Shown here piece by piece: positions 10,569 to 44,178 of a stretch of 45,720 bases of DNA. Origin of the DNA: Octopus bimaculoides (taxonomy: Eukaryota); contig NC_069009.1 of the NCBI RefSeq assembly GCF_001194135.2, forward strand, positions 68,412-114,131, read 5' to 3'. Numbering within the stretch: position 1 is the stretch's first letter; every line of letters begins with the position of its first letter. The translations under genes were made by a program, and so were the position numbers. The notes beneath the pieces are model-generated. The model was given only the letters and a program-made list of their open reading frames with translations, ran no database searches and had not been told where the DNA came from.

Positions 10569-10804
10569 TCAGTTCACTGTTGACCTATCTTTGCTGTCAT
10601 CGTTGTCATCATCGCTATCCTCATCCTTCTCGTCCTTCCTCCCTTCCTCTTCTTCATCTTCCATTCCCTTTGTTTTCATTGTCGTTGATGTCTCCTCCGC
10701 CTTTTTCTCGGGTACACCATATCCAGGTACGTACTTCTGCACCTGAACGTGAAACACTTCCTCAGATGGTGGAGCAATGATTTTCACATTGGTAATGAAA
10801 GGTT
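10569..10804 (-). CDS. MRPL1: MRPL1 exon 9 (last coding exon)
   Basis: Acceptor cttttcactttaacag|, phase 1. KPFITNVKIIAPPSEEVFHVQVQKYVPGYG is followed by an acidic tail and TGA at 10571-10569. The nine exons sum to 1146 nt, one open frame of 381 aa. Confidence 0.88.
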
Positions 10805-11014
10805 CTGTTAAAGTGAAAAGCACAAGTAGAGTACAGGGATACAAAAGCGGTTCAGGGGCAGCAGTCATTGTTACAGAGGGGACAGTGAAGCTAACAATGC
10901 AATTAATAGCAAAAAGGACACAAAAGAGGTACACTAGTGTGCATATTAAGTATATCAGAAAAAAAGTCATTACATAGGTACAATAGGAGAAGTATACAGA
11001 AGAGTAGAGTAGAA

Positions 11015-11245
11015 AGACGGCGAGCTGGCAGAAATGTTAGCATGCCAGGCGAAATGCTTAGCGGTATTTCGTCTGCCGTTACGTTCTGAGTTCAAATTCC
11101 GATGAGGTCGACTTTGCCTTTCATCCTTTCGGGATCGATAAATTAAGTACCAGTTATGCACTAGGGTCTATGTAATCGACTTAATCCCTCTGTCTGTCCT
11201 TGTTTGTCCCCTCTATGTTTAGCCCCTTGTGGGCGATAAAGAAAT
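11015..11245 (+). mobile_element. SINE family C in MRPL1 intron 8 with 15-bp TSD
   Basis: AAGAGTAGAGTAGAA (11000-11014) and AAGAGTACAGTAGAA (11246-11260), one mismatch. Confidence 0.9.
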
Positions 11246-11344
11246 AAGAGTACAGTAGAAGAGACAATAGCAACTCTATAATGCAGTCAAAGGAATACAT
11301 ATGTACACTGTGAGAGTACCAAAAGCCAAATATAATCTACGTAC

Positions 11345-11426
11345 TCAGGTTGGGAGAACGGTTCACACAGAGTTTATCAACCAATTTAAGGAAATTTTTC
11401 ACCAAATCTTCAGTTTCCATATTGAG
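11345..11426 (-). CDS. MRPL1: MRPL1 exon 8
   Basis: Acceptor ctgtatttttcag|, donor A|gtacgt. LNMETEDLVKNFLKLVDKLCVNRSPNL matches uL1 L.M..E.L..N.... Confidence 0.88.
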
Positions 11427-11529
11427 CTGAAAAATACAGAAAAATTTGGGGTGTTAGTAGGAACTTCTGATGTCACATCAATTATTTAAGGGGTTGCTGG
11501 ATAGTATTTTACAATGTCAATCACCATAC

Positions 11530-11642
11530 CTTTCCAAATGCTACCTGCATTATGGCAGCCTCCTCGGAGGTCTTTTTGCACTCATACTGAATACCGTTCA
11601 TAAGGCTGGTGATGATGGTCTTCACATCTGTGCCAACTGTAC
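11530..11642 (-). CDS. MRPL1: MRPL1 exon 7
   Basis: Acceptor ctccatctctacag|, donor AAG|gtatgg, phase 1/0. GTVGTDVKTIITSLMNGIQYECKKTSEEAAIMQVAFGK matches the uL1 GTV..D and ...G(K/T)L motifs. Confidence 0.92.
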
Positions 11643-12036
11643 CTGTAGAGATGGAGATGAGGAGAGGTGGTCATATTAAAATTTAAATGTTGGCCGGGTG
11701 GGAGGAGAGGGGGAGTGAGAAGGACCGGGTAGAAAACAGGAAAGTAAGATGGGTTTCGAATCATAAATTGCTCTTTTATATTTCAAAGATTCAAGGGGAG
11801 AATATGGGGGATGTGTGACCCGTGGGAATTAAGGATTTTGGTCTTTACTGTTGTAGACAGATACAGATAGCAAGAGGAAAAGTAAGAAGCAAAGAGAGAA
11901 GAGAGAGAGAGAGAAAGATAAAGGAGAGAGACATAAGAGTAGAGAGACTACTTATAAAGAGTAGAGAAAGAGAGACATACAAAGAGAGGAGAGAGAGAGA
12001 AAGAGAGAGGCATAGAGAGAGACAATGTTGTCCTAC

Positions 12037-12157
12037 CTTGCTTTTGGTGAGGAAATTTGTCTTTAAAAATGTGACGATAGGAGAGAAGATCCGAATAGAT
12101 GTCAGGGGTACAGACTACATAATCGTACATACTTCGAGAGAGGGCTTCAGACTTTAT
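12037..12157 (-). CDS. MRPL1: MRPL1 exon 6
   Basis: Acceptor tgtttcaattccag|, donor G|gtagga. IKSEALSRSMYDYVVCTPDIYSDLLSYRHIFKDKFPHQKQ matches uL1 D..VA.P....L..LR..L...FP. Confidence 0.92.
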
Positions 12158-12211
12158 CTGGAATTGAAACAAGAAATTTAGGGTTTAAATTGCTGTATAG
12201 CGGTGGTGATG

Positions 12212-12248
<37 letters not shown>

Positions 12249-13179
12249 NNNNNNNNNNNNNNNNNNNNNNNNNNNNNNNNNNNNNNNNNNNNNNNNNNNN
12301 NNNNNNNNNNNNNNNNNNNNNNNNNNNNNNNNNNNNNNNNNNNNNNNNNNNNNNNNNNNNNNNNNNNNNNNNNNNNNNNNNNNNNNNNNNNNNNNNNNNN
12401 NNNNNNNNNNNNNNNNNNNNNNNNNNNNNNNNNNNNNNNNNNNNNNNNNNNNNNNNNNNNNNNNNNNNNNNNNNNNNNNNNNNNNNNNNNNNNNNNNNNN
12501 NNNNNNNNNNNNNNNNNNNNNNNNNNNNNNNNNNNNNNNNNNNNNNNNNNNNNNNNNNNNNNNNNNNNNNNNNNNNNNNNNNNNNNNNNNNNNNNNNNNN
12601 NNNNNNNNNNNNNNNNNNNNNNNNNNNNNNNNNNNNNNNNNNNNNNNNNNNNNNNNNNNNNNNNNNNNNNNNNNNNNNNNNNNNNNNNNNNNNNNNNNNN
12701 NNNNNNNNNNNNNNNNNNNNNNNNNNNNNNNNNNNNNNNNNNNNNNNNNNNNNNNNNNNNNNNNNNNNNNNNNNNNNNNNNNNNNNNNNNNNNNNNNNNN
12801 NNNNNNNNNNNNNNNNNNNNNNNNNNNNNNNNNNNNNNNNNNNNNNNNNNNNNNNNNNNNNNNNNNACTTCGAGAGTGTAGTGGGTGCTTTTTACGTGCC
12901 ACTGGCACGAGGGCCAGTCAGGCGGTTCTGGCAACGGCCACACAGATGTAAAACTGAATGGACATAAAATCAAATGTGTGCTTCCCAAAGTGGGTGGAAC
13001 TGGCCCCTGGGGGTTGGGGTGGGGGTGGGAAGCATTGACGAAACATAGAAACCATGCCACAACAGATGACCGGAGCCTGGTGTAGATCTCTGGCTTGCTC
13101 GCGCCAGTCAAACTGCCCAACCCATGCCAGCATGGAAAATAGATTTTCAATGATGATGATCATATAAGAGATACAATAC

Positions 13180-13251
13180 CATATCTAAGAGTTCTTGACC
13201 TCCTGCGTGTGTTGCTCCTGCAGACAGTCCCTCTGTTACAGTTGCTATGTC
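13180..13251 (-). CDS. MRPL1: MRPL1 exon 5
   Basis: Acceptor attattattccag|, donor ATG|gtattg. DIATVTEGLSAGATHAGGQELLDM matches the uL1 A...GA..AGG..L motif. Confidence 0.9.
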
Positions 13252-13773: not shown

Positions 13774-13863
13774 CTTTGTGAAGAGAATGCAGCGTGTCTT
13801 GGTGTTGTCGTCAAACAGGTGCGGGAAGACGACGGTACCCTTGACGGTACTCAGGAATTTGGT
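13774..13863 (-). CDS. MRPL1: MRPL1 exon 4
   Basis: Acceptor (ct)n-gattccag|, donor AAG|gtaagt, phase 0/0. TKFLSTVKGTVVFPHLFDDNTKTRCILFTK matches the uL1 G.V.LPH...VFT motif. This frame is absent from the ORF track. Confidence 0.9.
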
Positions 13864-14775: not shown

Positions 14776-14992
14776 CTTCTTCTTGGTTTCCATATTTAAT
14801 TCCATGTCTGCATAAAGCAATCCATCGAGGTTGTTAAGCATCATAGGATCAGCATAAGCCTTGTGTTTCATGATGGCCACTTCAAGGGCCAACTTTTGGA
14901 CTGGGTAATGCTTGTGGAGCCATATGTTGTCGGTCGGGTATCTTGCCTCGAATTCCGGATTGATCTTACGTTTCACAACTTTCTTGGTTTGT
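14776..14992 (-). CDS. MRPL1: MRPL1 exon 3
   Basis: Acceptor tctctgtcgtttcag|, donor AAG|gtgag. ...YPTDNIWLHKHYPVQKLALEVAIMKHKAYADP...LYADMELNMETKKK resembles the MRPL1 P.D.V(Y/W)...YP and LDM...KK region. Confidence 0.88.
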
Positions 14993-15409: not shown

Positions 15410-15557
15410 AAAGGTGATTTAGGTTCATGTTTTTTCTTCTCTTTCGCTGGCTTCAGTGCTTTGAACCTAATTTTCTTCTGTTTAAATCGGTTCTGTTGGT
15501 AATTTGTGAGACAGGGCCCAGGGTGGGGGACGGCCTGGAACACACCATTGCAGCTTA
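15410..15557 (-). CDS. MRPL1: MRPL1 exon 2
   Basis: Acceptor ccttctctttcag|, donor TT|gtaagt, phases 1/2 fit. Open frame LSCNGVFQAVPHPGPCLTNYQQNRFKQKKIRFKALKPAKEKKKHEPKSP. Confidence 0.8.
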
Positions 15558-16836: not shown

Positions 16837-16903
16837 GGGCAGTGAGAGATCTTCGAGCGAGGATCGAACTCCAAGAGGAAGAAAGAACAGAAGCCAAAGA
16901 CAT
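16837..16903 (-). CDS. MRPL1: MRPL1 exon 1 (start codon, mitochondrial presequence-like)
   Basis: ATG at 16903; MSLASVLSSSWSSILARRSLTA is Ser/Arg-rich with no acidic residues. Consensus donor C|gtaagt, phase 1 fits exon 2. Supported by splice sites and composition, not homology. Confidence 0.78.
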
Positions 16904-16920
16904 TGCTGAATGAATGAGAA

Positions 16921-16930
16921 AACAGGAAGT
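16921..16930 (+). promoter_or_regulatory. ETS/GABP-like motif just upstream of the MRPL1 ATG
   Basis: ACAGGAAGT lies about 20-27 nt upstream of the start codon. GABP/NRF-2 sites are typical of nuclear mitochondrial-gene and bidirectional promoters in vertebrates. Function is inferred. Confidence 0.3.
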
Positions 16931-17149
16931 TCGGTTTCAGATGTGAGGAGTAAATAAATATTTACTGCAAAACGGAGGAAAATGAACCGAAAAAGAAGGA
17001 AAAAAATTTGTTGCTGCTGTGCGGTGGGGGTTGAAATAAAATATGTTGGATTTTAAATCGTTTATGTAAATGGTTGAAATGATTTTTTTTTCCTGAAAAT
17101 TGTCCGGCGGTTGGTGTTGAAGGGGATGTGTAGGAGGAAGAGCGAGAGG

Positions 17150-18204
17150 AAGAAATATAGATAGATACATAGGTAAAAGGAGAAGGGAAAGATATATATA
17201 TAGAGAGAGAGAAAAGAAAGGATAAAACTGTAAGAAAGAGAGGTTTTAAGAGAGATAATGAGAGTGAGAGGAGAAAGGATAGAAAGATAGATAGATTAAA
17301 AGAGAGGGAAAGGTATATAAAGGAAGGGGAAGTATGAGAAGGAAGACATTTAGAGGGAGAGTGAGAGGAGAAAAGGTAAATAAATAGAGAGGGAGAAAAA
17401 AGAGAAAAAGTGCACGAACAAAGGGGTATAATGAGAACGAGAGGAAAAGGTAGAGAGATATATAGATGAAAAGAGAGGGAAAGGGAAAGACTGGAAGGTT
17501 GAAAGAGACGAAAGGGTAAAGTGCAAGAAAGAGAGGAAAGGGGTGGTAAGAGTGAATGTGTGAAATGAGAGAGAGAAAGGGATAGACAACGATAGAGAGA
17601 TAGATAGAGTGAGAAAGAGAGAGAGAAAATCGTTAAAAGAGTGTGATAAGAAAGGAGGGGAAATAAAGAGGAGAAAATAAAAGAGTGGTGAAAGCAGGCA
17701 TTTGGTAAGAGAGAGAGATAAAGAGAGACGCAGGGTGGAAGGATGAGGAGAAACCAAAGTAGATACAGTAAGAGAGAGGGGGTAAATGAACAGTTAAGGA
17801 GTAAAAGGGTGAGGATGACGCAAGTAAAACAAAAAGAGGAGGAAATAGTGAAAGAGTGTGAAGTAGATAAAGAGGGGCAGGGGTTAATTAGAACGTTGAG
17901 AGAGTGAGAGAGGAAGGGAGGATAAAGAAACAGTAAGGGAGGTGTAAAGGGGAGGAAATAGGAATAGGAAGGGGAGAAGGATTAGAAGGATTAAAAGAGG
18001 GGAAAAAAGAGAATAATGAGAAAGAAAGCAAAGAAACAGGGGTTTAGTGAGAGAGAGAGTGTGTAGAAAATAACTGGAAGTGGGAGGAAAAGAGTGAGAG
18101 AGAGTATTGAGAGAGAGTATTGAGAGAGAGTATTGAGAGAGTAAAGGTGTGAGTAGAGAGGTAGAGAAATGAGAGAGGACACGAAAGAGAGAAAGAAAAC
18201 AGAG

Positions 18205-18247
<43 letters not shown>

Positions 18248-18800
18248 AGTAGATAGAAAGCTAGATAGGTGGGTAGATAGACAGATAGATGGATAGATAG
18301 GTGGATTGATAGATAGATAGATAGATAGATAGACAGAGAAATAGATAGACAGCTAGATAGGTAGGTAGATAGAGATAGATAGATAGATAGAGAGAGAGAT
18401 AGATAGAGAGAGAAGTAGATAGAAAGTTAGATAAGTGGATAGATAGATAGATAGATGGATAGATAGGAAGAGGAATTGAGAGCAAGGGGAGGAAAGAACA
18501 CGAGAAGTAAAAGAGATATAGAGAAACAGAGAAACAGAGATTGATTGGGTAAGAAAGAGAGAGAGAGAAAGATGATAGAGAGAGAGCATAACAAAGAAAC
18601 AGAGAGATATAAAGAGGAAGAGGAAGAGAAGAAGCGGAGAGAGAGAAAGAGAGTTAGAAAGGAATTGAAAGTGAGGGGGAGAAGAGAGAGAGAGAGAGAA
18701 AGAGAGGGGGAGAAGAAACGAGAGAGGAGAAGAGAGAGGCAGATAAAAAGTAGGAGGAACTATAAGTGTGTCAGAGATAGAAACGGAGAGGATTTTCCTC
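17150..18800 (+). repeat. Polypurine low-complexity tract with (GA)n and (GATA)n
   Basis: About 1.6 kb, almost entirely A/G on the plus strand. Confidence 0.9.
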
Positions 18801-19456
18801 AGAACAAGAACATAATTGTTTTATTTCTATATTTATTTATTATTTTTACTCTTATTTTTTTTACGTAAAGCGGATTAAATTGAAATACGTATTTGAACGA
18901 TGTCTTATTTGTATCGATCCATTCGTGACCAACCCCCCAAACACACACGTACATACATATATATATACATACATCCCGTGAATGAAATGAAATGAAATGA
19001 AATAAAAAAGGAAAATGAGATGGCCTCGACGCGGATTCGATCTCAGAACGCAAAGGGACGCAACTTCAAAACCAATAATGTGTGTGTTTGTATGTGTGTG
19101 AACGTGTGTGTGTGTGTGTGCGTTACATAAATGCATGTAAATATCCCCTCCCACATATATATGTGTCATTGTGCGTGCGCAAATGTAAAGTACACAATAC
19201 TCTCTCTCATACACACACACGCACGCGCACACACACATGCACACACACATATGTGCGTGTGTATGTGTATTGGTATACATACACACTGAAAGATTCATTT
19301 CTGTCTATCTATCTATAGCACACACGTATGTGTGTGTTTGTATATGTGTGTGTGTGTGTGTGTGTATATATATAAATATATATATACACATACACATATA
19401 TGTATATATATGTATATATATATGTGTCTATATATATATGTGTGTGTATATATATA

Positions 19457-19513
<57 letters not shown>

Positions 19514-19516
19514 ATG

Positions 19517-19549
<33 letters not shown>

Positions 19550-20139
19550 ANNNNNNNNNNNNNNNNNNNNNNNNNNNNNNNNNNNNNNNNNNNNNNNNNN
19601 NNNNNNNNNNNNNNNNNNNNNNNNNNNNNNNNNNNNNNNNNNNNNNNNNNNNNNNNNNNNNNNNNNNNNNNNNNNNNNNNNNNNNNNNNNNNNNNNNNNN
19701 NNNNNNNNNNNNNNNNNNNNNNNNNNNNNNNNNNNNNNNNNNNNNNNNNNNNNNNNNNNNNNNNNNNNNNNNNNNNNNNNNNNNNNNNNNNNNNNNNNNN
19801 NNNNNNNNNNNNNNNNNNNNNNNNNNNNNNNNNNNNNNNNNNNNNNNNNNNNNNNNNNNNNNNNNNNNNNNNNNNNNNNNNNNNNNNNNNNNNNNNNNNN
19901 NNNNNNNNNNNNNNNNNNNNNNNNNNNNNNNNNNNNNNNNNNNNNNNNNNNNNNNNNNNNNNNNNNNNNNNNNNNNNNNNNNNNNNNNNNNNNNNNNNNN
20001 NNNNNNNNNNNNNNNNNNNNNNNNNNNNNNATATATATATATATATACACACACACACATTTACACACGCGCGCGAGCGCACACGCACATCAACCTATAT
20101 TTTTATATATTTATAGTGTCAGAAAGAGAGAAATGTATG

Positions 20140-20170
<31 letters not shown>

Positions 20171-20339
20171 GCGTGTGTGTATAATTGTATATATATATAT
20201 ATATATAGATTATGTATTCAAAATACTTTGTACACATACATCCACACATACATATATATATATGTGTGTGTTTGCGTGTGTGTCTGTGTGTTATAATATC
20301 TTTATATGCGTGTGTGTGCGTTTTGCGTGTGTGTAAGGT

Positions 20340-20514
20340 ACATGTAGTAAATATTGACCAATCAGATGTCGTGTTGGCCTTCACTTCGATTTGCTGCTCA
20401 CAAGAAGTGTTGGTCCGACATATTTGTTGGAGTTGGAGCATCTGTTTAAGGACTGACAGAATTTTTGGTTACCTGAACAGTTTCTGGGCACAAGATTTAT
20501 AGATGAAGGTAAGT
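20340..20514 (+). promoter_or_regulatory. Candidate 5' non-coding exon or promoter of the CCR4 gene
   Basis: Unique island between microsatellites with a GACCAATCAG CCAAT box (CCAAT at 20358-20362), a perfect AAG|GTAAGT donor at 20508/20509 and a CpG-rich flank. Confidence 0.3.
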
Positions 20515-21354
20515 CAGGGGACCAGGCAGGGCTTGGACGAACGATAAGCGCGGAGAGAGGCTCCCCGCGTAGACGTGTGTGTGTGTATATATGGACGTTG
20601 GTTTGTTTGTTTTTGAATGTATGTGTGTGTGTGTATGTGTATCTGTCTGTCTGTGTGTGTGTGTATGTGTATCTGTCTGTCTGTGTGTGTGTGTGNNNNN
20701 NNNNNNNNNNNNNNNNNNNNNNNNNNNNNNNNNNNNNNNNNNNNNNNNNNNNNNNNNNNNNNNNNNNNNNNNNNNNNNNNNNNNNNNNNNNNNNNNNNNN
20801 NNNNNNNNNNNNNNNNNNNNNNNNNNNNNNNNNNNNNNNNNNNNNNNNNNNNNNNNNNNNNNNNNNNNNNNNNNNNNNNNNNNNNNNNNNNNNNNNNNNN
20901 NNNNNNNNNNNNNNNNNNNNNNNNNNNNNNNNNNNNNNNNNNNNCTGTCTGTCTGTGTGTGTGTGTATGTGTATCTGTCTGTCTGTGTGTGTGTGTGTGA
21001 GAGATCCTATTCTTTTACTCTCTCTAATATTCTGATATGTATATATATATATGTATATGTATAATATATATATACATATATATATGTATAATGTGTATAT
21101 AATGAACGTTAAAACGTAAAGGGTCCTATATATATGTATATGTGTGTGTGTGTGTACATAAACACAGATATGTACCTATACATATATATATATATATGTG
21201 TATATACATCAATATATGTATATATAATATATATATGCAAATGTGTAAAAATATAAATCTATACATGTATATAGATCTGCATTTATATGTGTATATATAT
21301 ATATATATGTATACGTGTATAGATATGTGGAAGTCTATCTTTATTATATGAGTG

Positions 21355-21390
<36 letters not shown>

Positions 21391-22292
21391 CACAAGTATG
21401 GAAGTGTGTATACATACATATATATACATATGTATATATATATATATATATATATATTTGAAGGTTTATATATATACGTGTATTTATACATGTGTGTATA
21501 TACTTTTACATAAGTGTGTATATATATATGTATATGGATATAAATGGGCATTGGTACATATGTGTATACATACGTATGTGCATATTTATATATTGTACAT
21601 GTGTGTGTACATATAGATAAGTATATATTTGCTGTACATGTGTGTATATATTTATGCATATATTTAATAGCCTACTTAAATGCATAGATATTCTTATATA
21701 TATATATATATATATATGAACATACAAACATATATAAGTGTATATCTACAGATATATATACACACGTGTATATAAATAGATATGCACTTTTGTAAATATG
21801 TATATACACGTGAGTGTGTATGTATACACATATATATAGGCATGAAATGTTAGAAAAATATGCCTCACCAAACTTCATTCTACCCATGCAAGCTGGAAAA
21901 TGTGGACGTTAAATAATGATAATAATAATAATAATAATAATAATGATATTTATTTCCAATTAAACGTGTATGTTTTATTAGAACATGATAATAATATTCA
22001 TATATGTGTCCATACATTAGTGCAGGTATGGCTGTTTGGTTAGTGAACTTGCTTCCCAATCATGCGGTCTCTGATGATGGAATCTCATAGTGAAACATCT
22101 TGGGCAAGTGGTTACTATAACCCTGGACTGAGTAAAGCCTTGTCTGTTTATTTCATCATCATCATCGTTTTATGTGTGTGTTCCATTCTCGAATCAGTTC
22201 AATGGTTTGACAGAAGCCACACCTGGTTCCATTGTCTGTTTTGGTATGGTCTCCACAACTGGCTGTCCTTCCTAACATCGACCACTTTACAC

Positions 22293-22455
22293 AGGCGCAG
22301 GAGTGGCTGTGTGGTAAGTAGCTTGCTTACCAACCACATGGTTCCGGGTTCAGTCCCACTGCGTGGCACCTTGGGCAAGTGTCTTCTACTATAGCCTCGG
22401 GCCGACCAAAGCCTTGTGAGTGGATATCGTAGACGGAAACTGAAAGAAGCCCGTC

Positions 22456-22489
<34 letters not shown>

Positions 22490-22998
22490 GTATATATATA
22501 GGCACAGGAGTGGCTGTGTGGTAAGNNNNNNNNNNNNNNNNNNNNNNNNNNNNNNNNNNNNNNNNNNNNNNNNNNNNNNNNNNNCTTTACACAGGCGCAG
22601 GAGTGGCTGTGTGGTAAGTAGCTTGCTTACCAACCACATGGTTCCGGGTTCAGTCCCACTGCGTGGCACCTTGGGCAAGTGTCTTCTACTATAGCCTCGG
22701 GCCGACCAAAGCCTTGTGAGTGGATTTGGAAGACGGAAACTGAAAGAAGCCCATCATATATATGCATATATATATATGTATGTGTGTTTGTGTGTCTGTG
22801 TTTGTCCCCCCAACATCGCCTGACAACCGATGCTGGTGTGTTTACGTCCCCGTCACTTAGCGGTTCGGCAAAAAGAGACCGATAGAATAAGTACTAGGCT
22901 TCCAAAGAATAAGTCCCGGGGTCGATTTGCTCTACTAAAGGCGGTGCTCCAGCATGGCCACAGTCAAATGACTGAAACAAGTAAAAGAGTAAAAGAGT
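22293..22998 (+). mobile_element. Family B SINEs: 5' half, a head fragment, then a full copy after the gap
   Basis: Head GGCGCAGGAGTGGCTGTGTGG at 22293 and 22593; the full copy ends gtaaaagagtaaaagag. Confidence 0.82.
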
Positions 22999-23776
22999 GT
23001 GCTGGGTATGTTTTACATGGCATTTGATAGATGGAAACATAAGAGGATGGAAGAATAAGATAGGTTGTAAGCATATGGGACGAATATATGGGGTGCTTTT
23101 AATGTGGCACTGGCACCCACATGTCTGCATGACTAGGGTCTCTTGGCTGACAGGGATGTAGAGGGCATGCCTGTATGTATGGATGGCCACGATTTTCCTG
23201 AGCTATTTTCCTTCTTGAACCACATGTCTCTCTCCCACCATGTTCTATCTCCATACTCCAAATCCACCCTTGTTCACCTCTATACCTGCCATCTCACCCT
23301 GTGTCCCTGTCACCCTCCGATCCACTTTCTGTATCCTCTCCTATACTTGCATTGTGAGGTGCTCTGGCATCTCATCACTACCACATCTACCTTCTTTCCA
23401 GCTACCCTCACCCACCCTTATTATAATCCTTTCTACTACAGGCACAAGACCTGAAATTTGGTAGGAGCTGGGGCTATTCAATTATATAGACCCTGAATGG
23501 ACGAAGGCAAAATCAAACTTGGCAGAATTTGAACTCAAAACGTAAAGATGGATGAAATGTTACTAAGCATTTAGTGGTTGGCGTCAGGAAGGGCATCCAG
23601 CTGTAGAAACCTTGCCAGATCAGATTGGAGCCTGGTGCAGCATCCTGGCTTGCCAGTCCTCAGTCAAACCGTCCAATCCATGCCAGCATGGAAAGTGGAC
23701 ATTAAACGATGATCAATGTGAATAAAAAACCATTGCATTCGACAGAATGATTTGAATGCTAAAGGGATAAATTCTG

Positions 23777-24497: not shown

Positions 24498-24499
24498 TA

Positions 24500-30180: not shown

Positions 30181-30194
30181 TATATATATATAAA

Positions 30195-30375
30195 GATTGG
30201 GGCTAGTAGTCATAGACATTCTCTGACAACCACTTCTGACTCTTTCTTGGAGGTACTGTGAAAAGCCAAATCCTGCTGCCACACATATTTTATAATTAAT
30301 ATCTAGACTGTTAATATATGAATGTGAAAAAGATAGTTGATTAACTGTAAACCTACATTTGGGCCACCCTGTATA
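30195..30375 (+). mobile_element. Tc1/mariner-like 3' end
   Basis: Ends ...TTTGGGCCACCCTG|TA (CAGGGTGG-type TIR followed by TA). The upstream DNA resembles a decayed PDL.P.DFFLWG..K region. Confidence 0.45.
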
Positions 30376-31670: not shown

Positions 31671-32620
31671 AGAGTAATTGAGTAACACTGTATTAGGGAA
31701 ACACACCTTGATACCTGCAATAAAAAAGCACACTAAGGAGACCCTTAGCTGCAAGGGTTGTGGGGCAACATCATAGAAAGAATAAGATGATGCGAGGCAT
31801 CGAGTCGCCGCTGCATCGGGAGGTTGCGGCTTTTACACGTGCACCTACTGGCTATGGATTGTGCGCGATGGACTGATGTTAGCCGACATGCACAGATTAG
31901 AGGTCGACTGATTTGTTTTTGGTTTTGATTTTTTAAAATCTTCCCGTCTTAACCACCAGCTGTTGCGTTTTATTATTATTATTATTATTATCATCATCAT
32001 CATCATCATCATCATCCTAGTAGTAGCCGTTTAGTATTAATACAGCTCCTCGCACTCAACTATCGCAGTTGTTGTCGTCGTTGGGTTTTCTAGATTTTTT
32101 TTTTTTTTTTTTTTTNNNNNNNNNNNNNNNNNNNNNNNNNNNNNNNNNNNNNNNNNNNNNNNNNNNNNNNNNNNNNNNNNNNNNNNNNNNNNNNNNNNNN
32201 NNNNNNNNNNNNNNNNNNNNNNNNNNNNNNNNNNNNNNNNNNNNNNNNNNNNNNNNNNNNNNNNNNNNNNNNNNNNNNNNNNNNNNNNNNNNNNNNNNNN
32301 NNNNNNNNNNNNNNNNNNNNNNNNNNNNNNNNNNNNNNNNNNNNNNNNNNNNNNNNNNNNNNNNNNNNNNNNNNNNNNNNNNNNNNNNNNNNNNNNNNNN
32401 NNNNNNNNNNNNNNNNNNNNNNNNNNNNNNNNNNNNNNNNNNNNNNNNNNNNNNNNNNNNNNNNNNNNNNNNNNNNNNNNNNNNNNNNNNNNNNNNNNNN
32501 NNNNNNNNNNNNNNNNNNNNNNNNNNNNNNNNNNNNNNNNNNNNNNNNNNNNNNNNNNNNNNNNNNNNNNNNNNNNNNNNNNNNNNNNNNNNNNNNNNNN
32601 NNNNNNNNNNNNNNNNNNNN

Positions 32621-32930
32621 GTGAGTGTTTATTGAGCGAAAACACCTAAAAAGCTCCACGAGGCTCCGGCAGGGGATGGTGGCGAACCCTGCTGTACTCT
32701 TCCACCACAACTTTCTCTCACTCTTACTTCCTGTTTCTGTTGTGCCTGTAATTCAAAGGGGTCAGCCTTGTCACACTCTGTGTCACGCTGAATATCCCCG
32801 AGAACTACGTTAAGGGTACACGTGTCTGTGGAGTGCTCAGCCACTTGCACGTTAATTTCACGAGCAGGCTGTTCCGTTGATCGGATCGACTGGAACCCTC
32901 GATGTCTTAAGCAACGGAGTGCCAACAACA
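32621..32930 (+). mobile_element. SINE family A, head lost in gap
   Basis: Near-identical body; ends gccaacaaca. Confidence 0.85.
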
Positions 32931-33995
32931 TGTTTCAGCAATGATTCCTGGTGGTGAGTTCTGTCCTTGAGGAAGACACTCTATTTCATGTTGCTCCAGT
33001 CCACTCATCTGGCAAATATGAGTCGTACCTGTAATTGAAAGGGGCCAGCCTTGTCACAATCTGTGTCCTGTTGAATATACCTATGATGAGCTTCTTTCAG
33101 TTTCCATCTACCAAATCCACTCACAAGGCTTTGGTTGGCGTGAAGCTATAGTAGAAGACACTTGCTCCAGGTCCCACACAATGGGACTGAACCCGAAACC
33201 ATGTGATTGGGAAGCAAGCTTCTTACCACACAGCCACATGTAGTTTTCTTTTTATGGCACCAGTCCCGATACTTTTTTTAAGCAGGCCTCTTTATGTACA
33301 CTTTAGCTTGTTTGTGTCTATAACATGGAGCCTTTTGGTGTGTGTGTGTGTGTGTGTGTGTGTGTACCTTGTGAATTAAGACAATGGTGGAAAATGTTTG
33401 TGTGAGAGGGAGAAACACGAGTCAGCTCATGACCCATTATTATTATTATTATTATTTAACAGGTGGTAACAAATGCGCTTGTTGGTGGGTGTGTGGATCG
33501 TGTGGTGGCGGTGGGTGTATATGTATGTGTGTAAATATATATAGTTTGATTTGTTGGTGTGTGTATGTATATATATATATATATGCATTATATATGTGTA
33601 TGTATATATATATGCATAGATATATGTGTATGTATATATGTATGTATAAATATGTGTGTGTGTGTATTTATAGTGTTTGTGTATATATATGTATGTAGTG
33701 TGTGTTTCTATGTAATGTATGTGTGTGAATATATTGATATATGTTTATATATATGTGCTTGTGTGTATATATGTAATGTATATGTGTGTGTGTATATATA
33801 TATATATATAAAATGTGTGTGTATATATATGTATATAAGATATATGATATATAAGGCTGATATACACACACGTGTAGTGTTGCCTTTTGCGACAGGTGAT
33901 GTCTGTCTGTAAGCTTAACTAGATAAACTGGGTGATTAGGTGTGTGTGTGTGTGTGTGTCTATTTAAACAGATGGCAGCACAGATCTGTTCATGT

Positions 33996-34032
<37 letters not shown>

Positions 34033-34157
34033 CATGCGTACAATGTATGTATATATAACACAGACACACATCATTGCTTCGTTAGACAGGTGATGTTTAT
34101 ACTCTTTTAGTTTGAGGGAACTAGGTGAGGTGTGTTGTGTTTAGACAGGCAATGCTG

Positions 34158-34223
<66 letters not shown>

Positions 34224-34643
34224 CTTTCTCTCTTTGTATAGAATGAGACAGGAAGTGCTGCGGTATGTTTATTTGTATAATTCGCAAGTTGTTACGTGTA
34301 CGCGCACGTGTGTACATGGCAATAATGGCCAAAGAGATGGACGACAATGAATGCAAGGGACAAACTGACGTGGGACAAACCTATTTAGTCAGCATCGTTT
34401 TTGTCATTTTGACGTTTTGGCATTTACTTGTTTCAGTAATTAGGGCTTCTTTCAGTTTCCGTCTACCAGATCCACTCACAAGACTTTTACCCTGTTGGTC
34501 AGTCTCCTGTGGCTTTTGTGGGTTTTTCTGAGTAGCCTTAAAGCGCCTCTCCCATTGGGAGTTTTATTTGTTTAATTTTATTTTATTTACTCCTTTTAAA
34601 AAAACCCTTTGTATTGTCCTGTTTTTATGTGGCCAATAAAAGA

Positions 34644-34675
<32 letters not shown>

Positions 34676-34904
34676 GGTGGTGAGCTGGCAGAATCATTAA
34701 CACGGGTGAAATGCTTAGCAGTAGTTTGTCTGTCTTCGTGTTCTGAGTTCAAATTCCACCTAGGTCGACTTTGTCTCTCATCCTTTCGGGAGTCAATTAA
34801 ATAAATACCAGTTACACACTGGGGGTCGATGTAATCGACTTAATCCCTTCCCCCAAATTTGAGGCCTTGTGCTTCCAGTAGAAAGGATCATTATTATTAT
34901 TATT

Positions 34905-35392
34905 TTATGTTTGACTTTTGTTTTGCATTTGTACAAGTTGGCTCCAAGTCTCACCCAGAGACCTCAAGAGACAACAAGTTAGAAGTTCATGTAGGTGTTA
35001 TGCCTAGGGTACCATATATTTGGATTTGTACATAGTGTTGTTCTAGAGAATGTTTAAGAAACCATAAGAAAATTATGTGTTTGCTTTAAAATTTGAGATC
35101 ACATAGACAGTATTTTACGGAGGATATGGGCAGTTCCCATGAGCACTATCTTTTGAACTTCAGCCATTTTGGGGTTTCCTGGTATCTGAGCTAGGTAGTA
35201 ATCAGCTCGTTTCGCTGTCATTCCCAGGGCACCTATGACAATAGGTATTGTTTTCGTCTTCAGATTCCACATTTTGCTAATTTCTATTTCAAGATCTTTG
35301 TATTTGCTCAGTTTTTGGTAGGTCTTGACAGATACGTTTATATCGATTGGGACAGTCATATCAATGAAGAGGCATGATTTTTTATTATTATT
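34905..35392 (-). mobile_element. 5'-truncated R4/Dong-like element (third subfamily), (TAA)n on both sides
   Basis: KSCLFIDMTVPIDINVSVKTYQKLSKYKDLEIEISKMWNLKTKTIPIVIGALG...QKIVLMGTAHILRKILSM* contains the ID..VP.D / K..KY.DL endonuclease motifs. ~190-nt 3'UTR. Confidence 0.85.
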
Positions 35393-35638
35393 ATTATTAT
35401 TATTGTTATTATTATTACTACTAAAGCAGTGAGCTGGCAGAATCATTAGCACACTGGCTGAAAAGTTTACCGGCATTTCGTCTGTTCTTTCATTCTGAGT
35501 TCAGATTCTGCCGAGGTCGACTTAGCCTGTCATCCTTTCAGGGTTGATAAAAAAAAAGTACCGGTTGTGTACTGGGGTCGATGTTATCACCTAGTCCTCT
35601 CCCACTGAAGTTCAGGCCTTGTGCCTATAGTAGGAAGG

Positions 35639-35686
<48 letters not shown>

Positions 35687-36279
35687 AATATTGCCTCTGT
35701 TTATGTTCTGGGTTCAATTTCCGCCAAGGTCGGCTTTGATTTTCATCCTTTTGGGATCGATAAATTAAGTACCAGTTGAGTACTGGGGTCGATGTAATCG
35801 TATTAATCCCTACTCCCAAACAATGTTATGGCCCTGTGCCTGAAGTAGAAAGGATTCACAGCTAGCCACCTACACTTTTCTCTGCAAAATAGGGATAGTT
35901 TATCCTGTTCAGGCTATATTATTAGCATTATTCTGCGATTGAGAATTTATAATCACTTCTTTAACTTTCTAAAAGACATCTCAACGCTTCTAAAAAAAGC
36001 AAACTTCGTTTGTCTATTTACGTTTGTCATAATTTGAATTATTATTATTATTATTATTTCGAATGTGGCAAGGGTTAGAATCGTTAACATGTCAGACAAA
36101 ATGCTTAGCAGTATTCCATTTGTATTTATGTTCTGAGTTCAAATTCTGCTGATGGCAACTTAGCCAGCCATCGTTAAAATAAGTGCCAGTTGATCATGTA
36201 ATTAAAGAGCTCGTCCCACTAAATTTCGGGCCTCGTACCAAAATTACAGAGAATTATTTTTATTTATATATTCTTTTAT

Positions 36280-36668
36280 TCTTTTACTTGTTTCAGTCAC
36301 TTGACTGCGACCATGCTGGAGCCCCACCTTAAGGGGTTTTAGTTGAAGAAACCGACCCCCCAGGACTTATTCTTTGTAAGCCTAGTACTTATTCTATCGC
36401 TCTTCTGCCGAACTAAGTTACAGGGGACATAAACTTACCAGCATCGGTTGTCAAGTGATGGTGGGGGGGAACAAACATAGACACAAAGATACACACACAC
36501 ACATATATATATGACAGGCTTCTTTTAGTTTCCATCTACCAAATCCACTCACAAGACTCTGGTCGGCCCGAGGCTATAGTAGAAGACACTTGTCCAAGGT
36601 GCCACGCAGTGGGACTGAACCCGGAACCATGTGGTTGAGAAGCAAGCTTCTTACCACACGGCCACGCC
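36280..36668 (-). mobile_element. SINE family B, full length
   Basis: Same consensus. Further partial copies at about 2600-2812, 14030-14104, 16105-16250, 25255-25405, 28270-28695, 33085-33240, 43395-43528 and 44530-45210. Confidence 0.85.
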
Positions 36669-37326
36669 TTTATTATTTATTTCATTTATATATTATTTAT
36701 CTTATTTATATATATATTTTATTATTTTTTTATCTTNNNNNNNNNNNNNNNNNNNNNNNNNNNNNNNNNNNNNNNNNNNNNNNNNNNNNNNNNNNNNNNN
36801 NNNNNNNNNNNNNNNNNNNNNNNNNNNNNNNNNNNNNNNNNNNNNNNNNNNNNNNNNNNNNNNNNNNNNNNNNNNNNNNNNNNNNNNNNNNNNNNNNNNN
36901 NNNNNNNNNNNNNNNNNNNNNNNNNNNNNNNNNNNNNNNNNNNNNNNNNNNNNNNNNNNNNNNNNNNNNNNNNNNNNNNNNNNNNNNNNNNNNNNNNNNN
37001 NNNNNNNNNNNNNNNNNNNNNNNNNNNNNNNNNNNNNNNNNNNNNNNNNNNNNNNNNNNNNNNNNNNNNNNNNNNNNNNNNNNNNNNNNNNNNNNNNNNN
37101 NNNNNNNNNNNNNNNNNNNNNNNNNNNNNNNNNNNNNNNNNNNNNNNNNNNNNNNNNNNNNNNNNNNNNNNNNNNNNNNNNNNNNNNNNNNNNNNNNNNN
37201 NNNNNNNNNNNNNNNNNNNNNNNNNNNNNNNNNNNNNNNNNNNNNNNNNNNNNNNNNNNNNNNNNNNNNNNNNNNNNNNNNNNNNNNNNNNNNNNNNNNN
37301 NNNNNNNNNNNNNNNNNNNNNNNNNN

Positions 37327-37555
37327 GTGACAAGGCTGACCCTTTGAATTACAGGCACAACAGAAACAGGAAGTAAGAGTGAGAGAAAGTTGTGGTGAAA
37401 GAGTACAGCAGGGTTCGCCACCATCCCCTGCCGGAGCCTTGTGGAGCTTTAGGTGTTTTCGCTCAATAAACACTCACAACGGCCGGTCTGGGAATCGAAA
37501 CCGCGATCTTATGGCCGCGAGTCTGCTGCCCTAACCACTGGGCCATTGGGCCTCC
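37327..37555 (-). mobile_element. SINE family A, 3' part lost in gap
   Basis: Head and 5' body on the minus strand. Confidence 0.85.
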
Positions 37556-37834
37556 TTAGTATGATGATGATGATGATCAAAAATTGCTTTTCCTCATTGA
37601 GAGGTCACAGCTCTGGCGTGCAGGACATGTGAGAATTTGGCAGGAAAGAATCCCAAGACAGATTCTTCAACCCAAGCCAACCGGCAGGATAGCTAGGGGT
37701 AGACCAAGAGTGGTTGGATTGTGTCAATAGTCTCAGTTGGTGGTCATGCTTGGGAACCCAGCCAGAAAGTGTAATGAAGGTTGCTTTTGATAGGACCCTA
37801 TGGAGGTGGGTCCTGAAGACTCTACCCCTACAAC

Positions 37835-38075
37835 CAGGGCTGTGGAGTTGACTCCGACTCCTCTACTCTACTATTGGCACCTCTGACTCTTCTTTATGTA
37901 ATTAAGTGACTGTGGTACACATATCTCATAAAGCATATACCGTTGTACTTTGAGTAAGCCTAGATGTTATAAGTGGTTTATATTAAAGAATAAAGATATT
38001 GTGAGTCAGAGCCAGTAAAACTATACTGACTCCAGCTACCCCTTAATTATTTCTGACTCCAGCTCCACAGCCCTG
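37835..38075. mobile_element. hAT-type MITE, 241 bp
   Basis: Perfect 13-bp TIR CAGGGCTGTGGAG...CTCCACAGCCCTG, sub-terminal GACTCC repeats and a perfect 8-bp TSD CCTACAAC (37827-37834, 38076-38083). Confidence 0.92.
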
Positions 38076-38112
38076 CCTACAACTAGGAGACTTAGGGGTA
38101 GACCAAGAATGA

Positions 38113-38347
38113 AAAAGGCGGCGAGCTGGCAGAATCATTAGCATGCCGGGCGAAATGCTTAGCAGTATTTTGTCTGCCGTTACGTTCTGAGTTCAAATTC
38201 CGCCGAGTTTGACTTCACCTTTCATCCTTTCGAGGTCGATAAATTAAGTACCAGTTACGCTCTGGGGTCGATGTAATCGACTTAATCCTTTTGTCTGTCC
38301 TTGTTTGTCCCCCTCTATGTTTAGTCCCTTGTGGGCACTAAAGAAAT
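38113..38347 (+). mobile_element. SINE family C with 8-bp TSD
   Basis: AAGAATGA at 38105-38112 and 38348-38355. Other C copies at about 5950-6297(-), 13320-13497(-), 15800-16105(-), 23430-23570(-), 34673-34905, 35423-36260, 41670-41945 and 42560-43085. Confidence 0.88.
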
Positions 38348-39610
38348 AAGAATGAGAAAGTTGGATAATATCCACAGTCTCGGTTGGTCATGTTAGGGAG
38401 CCTAGCCAGAAAGTGTAATGTTGCTTCTGATAGGACCCTATAAAGGAGATGACTGAGGACCCTACCCCAATAACCTTCCCAGGAGTCCTAGGGTGGACCA
38501 AGAATGAGATGGTTGGATAATATTGTCTCAGTTGGCCACACTTTGGAATCCATCAGGAAAGTGTAATAACAATTGCTTCTGAAACTGTATAATTAGATAA
38601 TTAATTTCTAGGTAGATAAAAAAATTGAGGTGATTACAGCTGGAAGATCTTAGCCTGTAGGTCTGCCTGGACCAGGACTGACCTGGGGCTAAACAACTAT
38701 AGCCCCTAATACCACTGAATTATACATTAACTAAGGTTTATCCTTTTGAAGATGTATTTATTGCCTGGTGGTTTGAATGTTGGTCTTCCAATCATAAAAT
38801 CATGGGTTCAATTCCTGGAATAGGCAATGTATTGTATCCTTGAGCAAGGGCCATCTACCAGCTTAGTGCTGATGTGGCCCTCTCCTTCTCTCTCTCTCCA
38901 ACTGTCACATCCTCAATCTTCTCACTCAAGAAGGACAGAGGCCATCTTTTAACTTTCAATAGCAGGGGTTTTTTTTGTTGTTTTTGTTTCTTGTCCTTTC
39001 TAATGATAATCCGAAGTTTATCACGTGAACAAAGCTGGGTTGCCTCAGCTAGTTACTTGATAAAAACCAACCCTGTGCATCTGTGAATTTACCATGCTGC
39101 ATTTAAGCCCCAAACCGCAGTGTCAAACAACCCAGAACATCTTCGCCATTCAAGTTTTCCTTAACGTCTAAGGGGAGATAACCATGTCGTATCATCCAGG
39201 GGTGTTGCCATATTTGCTATGCTTGGCATTGCAGGTTGGTGTGCCCTTATAAAGAGCTTTTTACCTCGCAGGAATATGTCAGGCCTATGGCCACAACAGA
39301 CAATTTGTAGTCTTGACAGCTCCCTGGCCTTGCCATCTCCTGTCAAATTGTCCAGCCCATGCCAGCATGGAAAATGGATATTCAGCGATGATTAATCTTT
39401 ACTGCAGATATCCACATATGTGGTTACACACGTCTGTCTGTTTGTCTTGTAATACAGTTGTTACAAATCTCCTTCAATGCAACTCTTTATAACACACATG
39501 TCTGTCTGTTTGTCTTGTAATACAGTTGTTACAAATCTCCTTCAAATGCAACTCTTTCTAACAAAAAAATTTCCTTTTTTTTTTTCCCCCGCTTTGTGTT
39601 TCAAACTCAG

Positions 39611-39874
39611 GACCCGTACGGAACTTGTGTCCCAAGCTATGGTCTCTGCGGCACCTGACGTCTCTCTACCTCAACGACAACAACCTCTTGCGCATCCCGC
39701 CGGACATTTCCAAACTCACCAACCTCACATATCTCGACCTCTCGTCCAACAAGCTGCGTAGTCTGCCGTCGGAGCTTGGGGATCTCTCACTGATGCGTCA
39801 ACTTCTCCTCAACAACAACTTTCTCCGTAATCTGCCGTTTGAACTCGGTAAATTGTTCCAGCTACAAACACTTG
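39611..39874 (+). CDS. CNOT6: CCR4-NOT deadenylase subunit CCR4 (CNOT6/CNOT6L-like), LRR exon
   Basis: Branch-like CTAAC, pyrimidine tract and ctcag| acceptor; donor G|gtgagt. GPVRNLCPKLWSLRHLTSLYLNDNNLLRIPPDISKLTNLTYLDLSSNKLRSLPSELG...LPFELGKLFQLQTL closely matches the CNOT6/6L LRR region as recalled. Confidence 0.95.
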
Positions 39875-41959: not shown

Positions 41960-42215
41960 GCAGTTCACACGTAAAATACACCATTTCGAGCGTGGCTGTT
42001 GCCAGTACCCGCCTGACTGGCTCCTGTGCCGGTGGCACGTAAAAGCACCCACTACACTCTCGGAGTGGTTAGGGTTAGGAAAGGTATCCAGCTGTAGAAA
42101 CTCTACCAGATCAGATTGGAGCCTGGTGTAGCCATCTGGTTTCACCAGTCCTCAGTCAAATCGTCCAACACATGGTAGCATGGAAAGCGGACGTTAAACG
42201 ACGATGGTGATGATT
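41960..42215 (+). mobile_element. Family D repeat, long copy
   Basis: Same consensus. Other copies at about 12867-13160, 13952-14025, 14453-14520(-), 23575-23712, 24905-25235, 25822-26210(-), 26400-26890, 39985-40661 and 44205-44480. Confidence 0.8.
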
Positions 42216-42216
42216 G

Positions 42217-42260
<44 letters not shown>

Positions 42261-42505
42261 TGACTATGCAAAACTGTTGATGGCCATTATTGACGTACAT
42301 TTAAACATGTTTGAATGAAATTAGAACAGTGTGCATCAAGCAATATTTATCTTTTTTTTGTTTCCCAATCAACATTATTGATCTTTTATTCTCAAATAAT
42401 AGACTGCATGCAGTAGATTGTATAGAATTTAGTATTGAACTTCAATAATATAAATTGTAGAAAAGAAAGAAAACCGGTCTAGTATTCTTTATTTTATCAT
42501 CATCA

Positions 42506-42540
<35 letters not shown>

Positions 42541-43086
42541 GTTATTGTTATTTTTATTGTATTCAAATCCTGCCAAGGTCAAGTTTGTCTTTCATCCTCT
42601 TGCAGGTTGATAAACGAATGTACCGGTCAAGGACTAGGGTTGATACGATAGTCTAACTCCTCTCTTCCCCTCAAGCCACTATCCTTGTGCCCAAATTTTA
42701 AACCATGAGGGCAGGGAGGTGGTAGAAATTCTACTGAGGTTGACTTCACCTTTTGTCCTTTTCCGTGTTGATAAAATAGGTACCAGTTTTGCACTGGGGT
42801 TGATGTAATTGAGTAGCCCCTCCCCACTAAATTTCAGCACTTTTGCCTTTAGTAGAAAAGATTATAATAATTGCAGTGAGCTGACAGAATCATTAGCATG
42901 CTGAGCAAAACGCTTAGTGGCATTTCGTCCGTTGCTATATTTTTAGTTCAAATTCCGCCACTGTCGACTTTGCCTTTCATATTTTCAGGGTCAATAGAGT
43001 TAGTACCAGTTGCATACTAGGGTCAGTGTAATTGACTTAACCCCTCTTCTGAAATTGCTGGCATTGTGCCAAAATTTGAAACCGTT

Positions 43087-43292
43087 ATTATTACCGCTGC
43101 CTTTGTGAAGGCGGCGGTATTGTTTTCAGTTGTGTTTGTTTGTTTGTCTGTGGACAAGATATCTCAAGAACTGCTGGATGGATTCAGATGAAACTTTCAG
43201 GGATGTTTGGCCTTATGACTGGCATGAACTGATTAGATTTTGGGATCAATCCAGTACTGGACGGAGGTTTGCGCTCTGTGAGTGCTCTTGTT
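43087..43292 (+). mobile_element. Helentron-associated non-autonomous element (HINE/DINE-like)
   Basis: 5' hairpin TACCGCTGCCTT-TGTG-AAGGCGGCGGTA, a (GTTT/GTCT)n tract, 3' sub-terminal CGGAGG and hairpin GCGCTC-TGT-GAGTGC ending in TT. An internal fragment also lies at about 28025-28175. Confidence 0.65.
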
Positions 43293-43530
43293 AAAACTAC
43301 AAGGAATTATAATCTTTAGGGAAGTTAGTTGAAACGTATTTCATTTGGCTCTTGATGTTCTCAGTGTGAAAGAGTGACAAGGGTTTTCTCGTAAGTTTCC
43401 ATCTACCAAATCCACTCACAAGGCTTTGGTCAGCCTGAGTCTGTAATAGAAAACACTTGTCCAAGGTGCCATGCAGTAGGACTGAACCTAGAACCATGTG
43501 GTTGAGAAGCAAACTTCTTACCACACAGGT

Positions 43531-43921
43531 TGTTGTTGTTGGCACTCCGTCGCTTACGACGTCCAGGGTTCCAGTTGATCCAATCAATGGAATAGCCTAC
43601 TTGTGAAATTAACGTGCAAGTGGCTGAGCACTCCACGGACACGTGCACACTTAACGCAGTTCTCGGGGATATTCAGCGTGACACAGAGTGTGACAAGGCT
43701 GACCCTTTGAATTACAGGCACAACAGAAACAGGAAGTAAGAGTGAGAGAAAGTTGTGGTGGAAGAGTACAGCAGGGTTCGCCACCATCCCCTGCCAGAGC
43801 CTTGTGGAGCTTTAGGTGTTTTCACTCAATAAACGCTCACAACGCCCAGTCTGGGAATCGAAGCCGCGATCCTATGACCACGAGCCCGCTGCCCTAACTA
43901 CTGGGCCATTGCACCTCCACC
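43531..43921 (-). mobile_element. SINE family A, full length with 10-bp TSD
   Basis: Flanked by CCACACAGGT at 43521-43530 and 43922-43931. Inserted in the head of a family B copy. Confidence 0.9.
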
Positions 43922-44079
43922 CCACACAGGTATACCTTTGCCTTACAGTGTGTTTTTGTGATGTATAACTAGCAAAATTTATGGATTGTTTGATAAGGGT
44001 GAAGGGAAATAAGTTAGATGATGAATATGGTGGTTGCTTAAATATTTATTCATGTCATCTCTTCTGTTTCCTCTGACAG

Positions 44080-44178
44080 GTCTGCAGGGAAATCCATTGT
44101 CTCCAGATATTTTAAATCGTTACAATGAACCAAACGGGACTCAAAAGCTACTCAGCTACATGTTGGATCACTTAGCAC
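44080..44178 (+). CDS. CNOT6: CCR4 (CNOT6/6L-like), next exon (end of LRR region)
   Basis: Acceptor ctgtttcctctgacag|, donor C|gtaagt, phase 1. GLQGNPLSPDILNRYNEPNGTQKLLSYMLDHLA matches CNOT6L GLKGNPL..DIL..Y..P.GT.KLL..MLD.L. The nuclease-domain exons lie beyond the window. Confidence 0.95.

Follow-up and report, generated by a model that had tools for sequence, protein, structure and literature searches.

In this study we analyse a stretch of 45,720 bases from Octopus bimaculoides (hereafter the window), which contains the gene of the mitochondrial ribosomal protein MRPL1 and, divergently transcribed from it, the beginning of the gene of the CCR4 deadenylase, CNOT6/6L. The window corresponds, gaps included, to about positions 68,412-114,131 of the 12-Mb record CM046629.1 in assembly GCA_001194135.2, and the cephalopod host supposed in the preliminary description, which was made from the letters of the sequence, is thereby established. 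It is AT-rich and carries 17 runs of N with a total of 6,094 N. On the whole, our results show that the same two genes adjoin, in the same orientation, in the oyster Magallana gigas, the brachiopod Lingula anatina and the tubeworm Lamellibrachia satsuma, and that they are neighbours in human and pig, so that an ancestral bilaterian pair is well supported.

MRPL1 lies on the minus strand, with its ATG at 16903 and its stop codon ending at 10569, exactly the extent that had been proposed for it. Its nine exons (Table 1) are all bounded by AG and GT, and their join translates exactly to the annotated protein P0122, '39S ribosomal protein L1, mitochondrial [Octopus bimaculoides]', of 381 aa. Since every residue of P0122 is encoded in readable bases, the reading frame is intact and no coding sequence of MRPL1 is hidden in gaps. 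In a partial model of the gene, the Pfam domain Ribosomal_L1 (PF00687) is detected at E=6.4e-13, with 49.2 bits against a cut-off of 32.2. The top matches of this model in PDB are mammalian 39S L1 proteins (E=1.4e-11 to 5e-8), to which the N-terminal extension aligns too, while bacterial 50S L1 reaches only E=2e-5 or weaker; judged by these alignments, the protein is nearer to mitochondrial L1 than to bacterial L1. Its N-terminus is Arg/Ser-rich as read from the sequence. Single MRPL1 exons give no Pfam match, and a homologue search with exon 3 alone finds none. A tblastn search with a human MRPL1 sequence missed the gene, phmmer gave weak collinear matches, and the matches of the MRPL1 profile search come almost all from mammals, besides the two octopuses.

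The second gene is represented by two plus-strand exons with clean acceptor and donor sites. These exons are 76-79% identical to the 'CCR4-NOT subunit 6-like' proteins of molluscs and brachiopods, and they align as one stretch to residues 43-163 of human CNOT6L (7voi_C, 169 bits) and CNOT6 (7ax1_A, 162 bits), so the assignment to CCR4 in the preliminary description is upheld, together with the divergent orientation of the two genes. Both belong to the leucine-rich repeat (LRR) domain, which is the part of CNOT6 that binds CAF1 (CNOT7/8); the window holds just these two LRR exons, and the EEP nuclease domain lies beyond the window end. Invertebrates have one CCR4/CNOT6 gene, co-orthologous to the vertebrate CNOT6 and CNOT6L. 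In oyster, Lingula and tubeworm one exon encodes the first ~40 residues of CNOT6 (M…PNPRR…GKKS.W.ELEITG, with a start of the form MP[KR][DE]KY). The intron positions are identical in these three animals and octopus, and the conserved first exon ends where the octopus exon at 39611 starts. Position 39611, from which the exons of CCR4 had been said to run, is therefore a true exon start, but that of the second coding exon and not of the gene. In the readable window, neither a profile of seven N-termini run against open reading frames (ORFs) of at least 8 aa nor motif regular expressions in six frames detected the first coding exon. It is likewise absent from the comparison locus of O. sinensis (L005), which is nearly gap-free and takes in the 10 kb upstream of MRPL1; a single match to the first-exon profile in this locus was rejected as a false positive within a short interspersed element (SINE). 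The missing exon touches the completeness of the locus, not the identity of the CNOT6 gene.

Below we turn to the other animals, for which the loci of CNOT6-like proteins were compared with 10-kb flanks. In the oyster, in two contigs of Lingula and in the tubeworm (L001 to L004), the upstream neighbour of CNOT6 carries collinear MRPL1 exons, including those of the N-terminal extension, at E=2.5e-16, 1.3e-9, 6.8e-9 and 2.7e-10 respectively; octopus exon 3 has homologous exons on the upstream side of CNOT6L in all three animals. Because these N-terminal exons are specific to MRPL1, the neighbour is MRPL1 and not the cytosolic RPL10A. The start codons in these pairs stand 1.5-3 kb apart. Counting the window, the 5'-5' orientation is found in 5/5 lophotrochozoan loci, which represent Mollusca, Brachiopoda and Annelida, and the pair is compact in these three phyla while expanded in octopus. 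At the CNOT6 loci of three ecdysozoans, namely louse, nematode and spider mite, the pair is absent, and other genes stand upstream. For mammals, the intergenic position given for the human variant rs10518182 (chr4:77,835,861) has CNOT6L and MRPL1 on its two sides (PMC12969348), the listed neighbours of human CXCL13 are SEP11, CCNI, CCNG2, CNOT6L and MRPL1 (preprint 10.1101/2024.08.31.609994), and a pig marker table gives CNOT6L and MRPL1 as nearest to one marker, with FRAS1 further out. By our estimate, the chance that two given genes adjoin in a genome of ~20,000 genes is ~1e-4. Adjacency in the same orientation in several phyla is no coincidence, and common ancestry with loss in the sampled ecdysozoans is the one reasonable explanation, in accordance with the ancestral bilaterian microsynteny which the preliminary description had put forward.

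The spacer, measured from the MRPL1 ATG to the first visible CNOT6 exon, had been described as free of any other host gene, and our analysis finds nothing gene-like in its readable part. No Rfam family and no tRNA are detected there, its ten most complex ORFs are without a Pfam domain, and neither Octopus annotation places a gene within the 10 kb that precede MRPL1. Of its readable bases, 53% belong to sequences present more than once in the window, namely SINE-like elements and microsatellites. From 16668 to 23572 the window is collinear with the 10-kb upstream flank of O. sinensis MRPL1, including the flanks of the spacer gaps 19551-20030, 20696-20944 and 22526-22584; these three gaps are therefore bridged by homologous sequence free of CNOT6 exons. 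As for a gene hidden in the spacer gaps, which had been named as a possible objection, the cross-assembly comparison reaches 23572, and the gap 24114-24389 and later gaps fall outside it.

The annotated O. bimaculoides MRPL1 locus (L006) equals the window from 26903 to 8505 with 100% identity in each ungapped block. The gaps themselves can be judged by the comparison with O. sinensis. The gap 14105-14452 falls in the MRPL1 intron between exons 3 and 4, and the gap 12249-12866 in that between exons 5 and 6, both with flanks collinear with O. sinensis. Across the two gap-containing intervals, O. sinensis has 2,687 against 760 bp and 1,483 against 811 bp in the window, that is, 1.8-3.5 times more, and the whole MRPL1 gene spans 19.8 kb in O. 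sinensis and 6.3 kb in the window. Since the O. sinensis intervals are much longer across the same gaps, the lengths of the N runs in the window are too small. Beside most gaps lie repeat arrays, including (TA)n, a 30-bp TG-rich array that flanks one gap on both sides, a 121-bp satellite, a 185-bp tandem repeat and an AT-rich array; because most gaps adjoin such tandem or simple repeats, we regard them as repeat-induced assembly breaks.

Table 1. Coordinates of the features at the MRPL1-CNOT6/6L locus of Octopus bimaculoides and at the loci compared with it
Feature	Sequence	Position	Strand	Remark
MRPL1 exon 1	window	16837..16903	-	MSLASVLSSSWSSILARRSLTA + 1 nt; donor GTAAGT
MRPL1 exon 2	window	15410..15557	-	lysine-rich N-terminal extension
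MRPL1 exon 3	window	14776..14992	-	MRPL1-specific N-terminal extension, YPVQ…ADPMMLNN…
MRPL1 exon 4	window	13774..13863	-	
MRPL1 exon 5	window	13180..13251	-	DIATVTEGLSAGATHAGGQELLDM
MRPL1 exon 6	window	12037..12157	-	
MRPL1 exon 7	window	11530..11642	-	
MRPL1 exon 8	window	11345..11426	-	
MRPL1 exon 9	window	10569..10804	-	acidic tail and stop codon
CNOT6/6L second coding exon	window	39611..39874	+	LRR domain, G·PVRNL…QTLG
CNOT6/6L third coding exon	window	44080..44178	+	LQGNPLSPDILNRYNEPNGTQKLLSYMLDHLA
Ribosomal_L1 gene, 375 aa	Magallana gigas L001	ends 8492	-	CNOT6L ATG 10001 (+)
Ribosomal_L1 gene	Lingula anatina L002	5108-7048	-	upstream of CNOT6-like
Gene carrying MRPL1 exons	Lingula anatina L003, second contig	6541-8416	-	no recorded Pfam match
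Ribosomal_L1 gene, 349 aa	Lamellibrachia satsuma L004	ends 7697	-	upstream of CNOT6-like
Ankyrin/RCC1/BTB gene	Pediculus humanus L007			upstream, same strand as CNOT6
Sec24-like gene	Caenorhabditis bovis L008			upstream, divergent to CNOT6
Cuticlin/zona-pellucida gene	Tetranychus urticae L009			upstream, same strand as CNOT6
Spacer, MRPL1 ATG to first visible CNOT6 exon	window	16904..39610		22,707 bp, 2,803 N (12%) in nine gaps
Candidate MRPL1 core promoter	window	16904..17010	-	ETS-like ACTTCCTG 20-27 nt before ATG; presumed function
Compared gap-containing intervals	window	14662-13902 and 13044-12233		
Compared gap-containing intervals	O. sinensis L005	19585-22272 and 23418-24901		
Tandem/simple repeats at gaps	window	19365-19550, 20618-20998, 23768-24113, 26399-26736, 36671-36733		
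SINE-like copies	window	22290-22491, 22590-22991, 9123-9302, 25236-25403, 29939-30119, 31256-31446, 36505-36669, 45039-45211		

Several further observations concern the two genes and their surroundings. A candidate MRPL1 exon at 13661-13605 was dropped, being contradicted by P0122. The start of exon 2 (15506-15545, ~40 nt, …SCNGVFQAVPHPG…) resembles a segment of intron 1 about 230 bp upstream, at 15631-15782, which contains SCNGVFQAVSHPGSC in an ORF; both match one and the same O. sinensis segment (L005 13116-13248), which suggests that the exon start arose by local duplication or from a repeat. On the other side of MRPL1, a sphingosine-kinase-like gene with the domains DAGK_cat and YegS_C (annotated with 494 aa, L006 19237-26335) has its last exon at 6825-7667 on the plus strand and is tail-to-tail with MRPL1, with ~2.9 kb between its end and the MRPL1 stop codon. 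For CNOT6, the annotations of the nematode (L008 15403-20035) and the spider mite (L009 14747-20644) divide the LRR part and the Exo_endo_phos part between two genes, and such split gene models would explain that every match of the CNOT6 search has at most 212 aa. In addition, intronless copies of the CNOT6 N-terminus and LRR domain are found in two eukaryotic contigs of ENA assemblies (L010 10001-10480 and L011 10001-10483; P0079 and P0049), one beside reverse-transcriptase ORFs and the other near a gene of an olfactory-receptor-type seven-transmembrane protein. They are possibly retrocopies and are uninformative for synteny.

Within the spacer, the ORF 35099-35476 on the minus strand has sub-threshold Pfam matches only. 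It has in common with the ORF 2380-2730, also on the minus strand, a C-terminal motif of 43 aa (35% identity, E=9e-8), and because of this recurrence we read it as a transposon tail; both ORFs are probably the tails of a transposon-encoded protein. The SINE-like element measures ~170-400 bp and has many copies in the window at 88-96% identity. Its tandem pair around the 59-N gap 22526-22584 is also in tandem in O. sinensis (L005 3383-2810).

It is of interest to ask whether the sequence upstream of MRPL1 may serve both genes. Compared with O. sinensis, the block 16830-17450 has 85% column identity, and the ETS-like ACTTCCTG is present in both species, so a candidate core promoter of MRPL1 may be placed here (Table 1). 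We do not regard another tract, 16250-16660 in MRPL1 intron 1, as a CpG-island promoter, since it reads as degenerate tandem copies of the core of the abundant SINE-like repeat. This tract is the second most CpG-dense in the window (31 CpG per 400 bp, observed/expected 1.28) and has 82-90% identity to O. sinensis intron 1, against ~75% in the neighbouring non-coding DNA.

Based on these results, the reading that we favour, with a probability of roughly 0.8, is that MRPL1 and the single-copy CCR4 deadenylase gene of invertebrates form an ancestral bilaterian 5'-5' pair. In the ancestor, a mere 1.5-3 kb would have separated the two start codons, and both genes would have drawn on one divergent promoter region with intermingled promoter DNA, as Irimia et al. 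(2012) describe for many conserved pairs; such spacing would have left a very small target for harmless breakpoints, so that the genes stayed together. In the octopus, SINEs, satellites and microsatellites would have inflated the spacer, the first CNOT6 intron or both to more than 20 kb, and the first coding exon of CNOT6 would be missing because it falls in an assembly gap or in sequence that was left unassembled.

Several points weigh against this reading or parts of it. The argument of the small target fails for octopus and human, since their spacers are tens of kb long. The common promoter region is deduced from ATG-to-ATG distances, and a scan of four short intergenic regions for ETS, NRF1, YY1, NFY, SP1 and ZNF143 motifs gives none that is common across phyla. 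Octopus CNOT6 has its 5' end in a gap, in sequence missing from the assembly or at another place. The comparison covers bilaterians, with mammals as the only deuterostomes. Moreover, of what had been said about the human locus, the adjacency is borne out by published descriptions, while the divergent orientation, with CNOT6L on the minus and MRPL1 on the plus strand and ~43 kb between them, is what we take to be the case.

Among the alternatives, the one that survives best is that the adjacency is ancestral and no breakpoint happened to fall between the genes, with no coupling in the past or at present. The unrelated functions of MRPL1 and CNOT6 would be expected under such neutral survival, as would the loss of the pair in louse, nematode and mite with no obvious effect, the large spacers of octopus (22.7 kb) and human, and the want of a cross-phylum conserved motif; moreover, hundreds of ancestral blocks persist in cephalopods anyway. 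It accounts less well for the strict adjacency and orientation that four phyla, and mammals besides, have kept for more than 500 million years, for ATG-to-ATG distances of merely 1.5-3 kb in three phyla, and for the fact that conserved pairs are as a class enriched for the 5'-5' orientation and for co-expression (Irimia et al. 2012). On this balance we hold neutral survival to be rather unlikely.

A second alternative is a bidirectional promoter at work in the octopus. An unannotated first exon of CNOT6, coding or non-coding, would then stand by the MRPL1 start, intron 1 would exceed 20 kb, and a single nucleosome-free region would serve the transcription of both genes. Such an arrangement would agree with the compact pairs of oyster, Lingula and tubeworm, with the conserved block and its ETS-like site upstream of the MRPL1 ATG in two Octopus species, and with the long first introns that are common in cephalopods. 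Against it, no first coding exon is present in the 6.7 kb by MRPL1 or in the 10 kb upstream in O. sinensis, neither annotation calls a gene upstream of MRPL1, and the human 5' ends presumably stand as far apart as assumed above. We therefore consider both this promoter and a non-coding leader exon of CNOT6 beside octopus MRPL1 improbable. From the ATG-to-ATG distances, a shared promoter is plausible for compact genomes; for octopus, where the preliminary description had proposed one, it is unsupported, since 22.7 kb separate the MRPL1 ATG from the first visible CNOT6 exon and no first coding exon was found, and for human, with the spacing that we assume, it is unsupported likewise. Slightly less probable still is that selection has acted since the bilaterian ancestor, even across spacers of 20-40 kb, to keep the genes under joint regulation, by which the supply of mitoribosomes and cytoplasmic mRNA deadenylation would be tuned to each other; such a coupling might work, e.g., via a promoter-proximal element common to both genes or via a leader exon of CNOT6 by the MRPL1 start. 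Finally, that the scaffold mis-joins an MRPL1 contig to a CNOT6 contig might be suspected from the nine gaps between the genes, the missing first coding exon, the too small N-run lengths and the gaps from 24114-24389 onwards that have no comparison with a second assembly, but it is very improbable, as a random mis-join would very rarely reproduce exactly the order and orientation that oyster, Lingula and tubeworm show; moreover, collinearity with O. sinensis extends over the first 6.7 kb of the spacer, and the gaps fall in tandem or simple repeats.

The pair may now be set beside known systems. Irimia et al. 2012 (PMC3514665, Genome Res 22:2356) reported that conserved ancestral microsyntenic pairs (CAMPs) are mostly 5'-5', conserved in orientation and co-expressed; in human the 5'-5' pairs are on average 41 kb apart, and flies and tunicates are exceptions in several of the orientation results. 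MRPL1-CNOT6 resembles these pairs in being non-paralogous neighbours with 5'-5' adjacency across phyla and a human spacing of tens of kb, and it is unlike the 'genomic regulatory block' subtype of CAMPs, because neither gene is a developmental regulator. Another divergent pair with a nuclear gene for mitochondrial function is HSPD1-HSPE1, whose conservation reaches from human to holozoans outside the animals (cited in PMC3514665). The members of that pair, however, are functional partners, are separated by less than 1 kb in human and use one promoter, as experiments have shown, whereas MRPL1 and CNOT6L have unrelated functions and, in human and octopus, spacers of tens of kb. In the TWNK-MRPL43 pair, too, a mitoribosomal protein gene is divergent to an unrelated gene; a bidirectional promoter is reported for it, as is its disruption in certain lineages (preprint 10.1101/2024.10.27.620512). 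That pair is documented in vertebrates only and tightly spaced, whereas MRPL1-CNOT6 spans protostomes and deuterostomes and is loosely spaced in large genomes.

For cephalopods, Schmidbaur et al. 2022 (PMC9023564) counted 275 metazoan microsyntenic blocks kept in Euprymna against 216 in scallop, and found larger intergenic regions in retained ancestral blocks than in cephalopod-specific ones. MRPL1-CNOT6 is similar to these blocks as an ancestral linkage that has outlasted the reorganisation of coleoid genomes, although a two-gene pair falls outside their definition, which needs at least three genes. In the accessible portion of the supplement text of that study neither gene name occurs, and the description 'Ribosomal protein L1' matched only L10. 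We found no paper that discusses CNOT6L-MRPL1 synteny, the six found to name both genes being on other subjects, and an earlier listing in supplementary gene lists is possible. Since the squid keeps metazoan blocks at about the level of the scallop, retention in a coleoid is not exceptional, and the emphasis which the preliminary description laid on survival despite heavy rearrangement is not sustained.

Overall, the MRPL1-CNOT6 pair is genuine but unexceptional, one more instance of conserved divergent microsyntenic pairs, which are already known as a class. Should it be under constraint, it would join HSPD1-HSPE1 among the deeply conserved divergent pairs with a gene for mitochondrial function and would offer a convenient test case of whether a shared promoter or a small breakpoint target is the holding force, for which the compact forms in oyster, Lingula and tubeworm and the expanded forms in octopus and human provide a natural comparison. 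If it has survived neutrally, it would be a routine synteny marker that anchors the O. bimaculoides scaffold to spiralian genomes.

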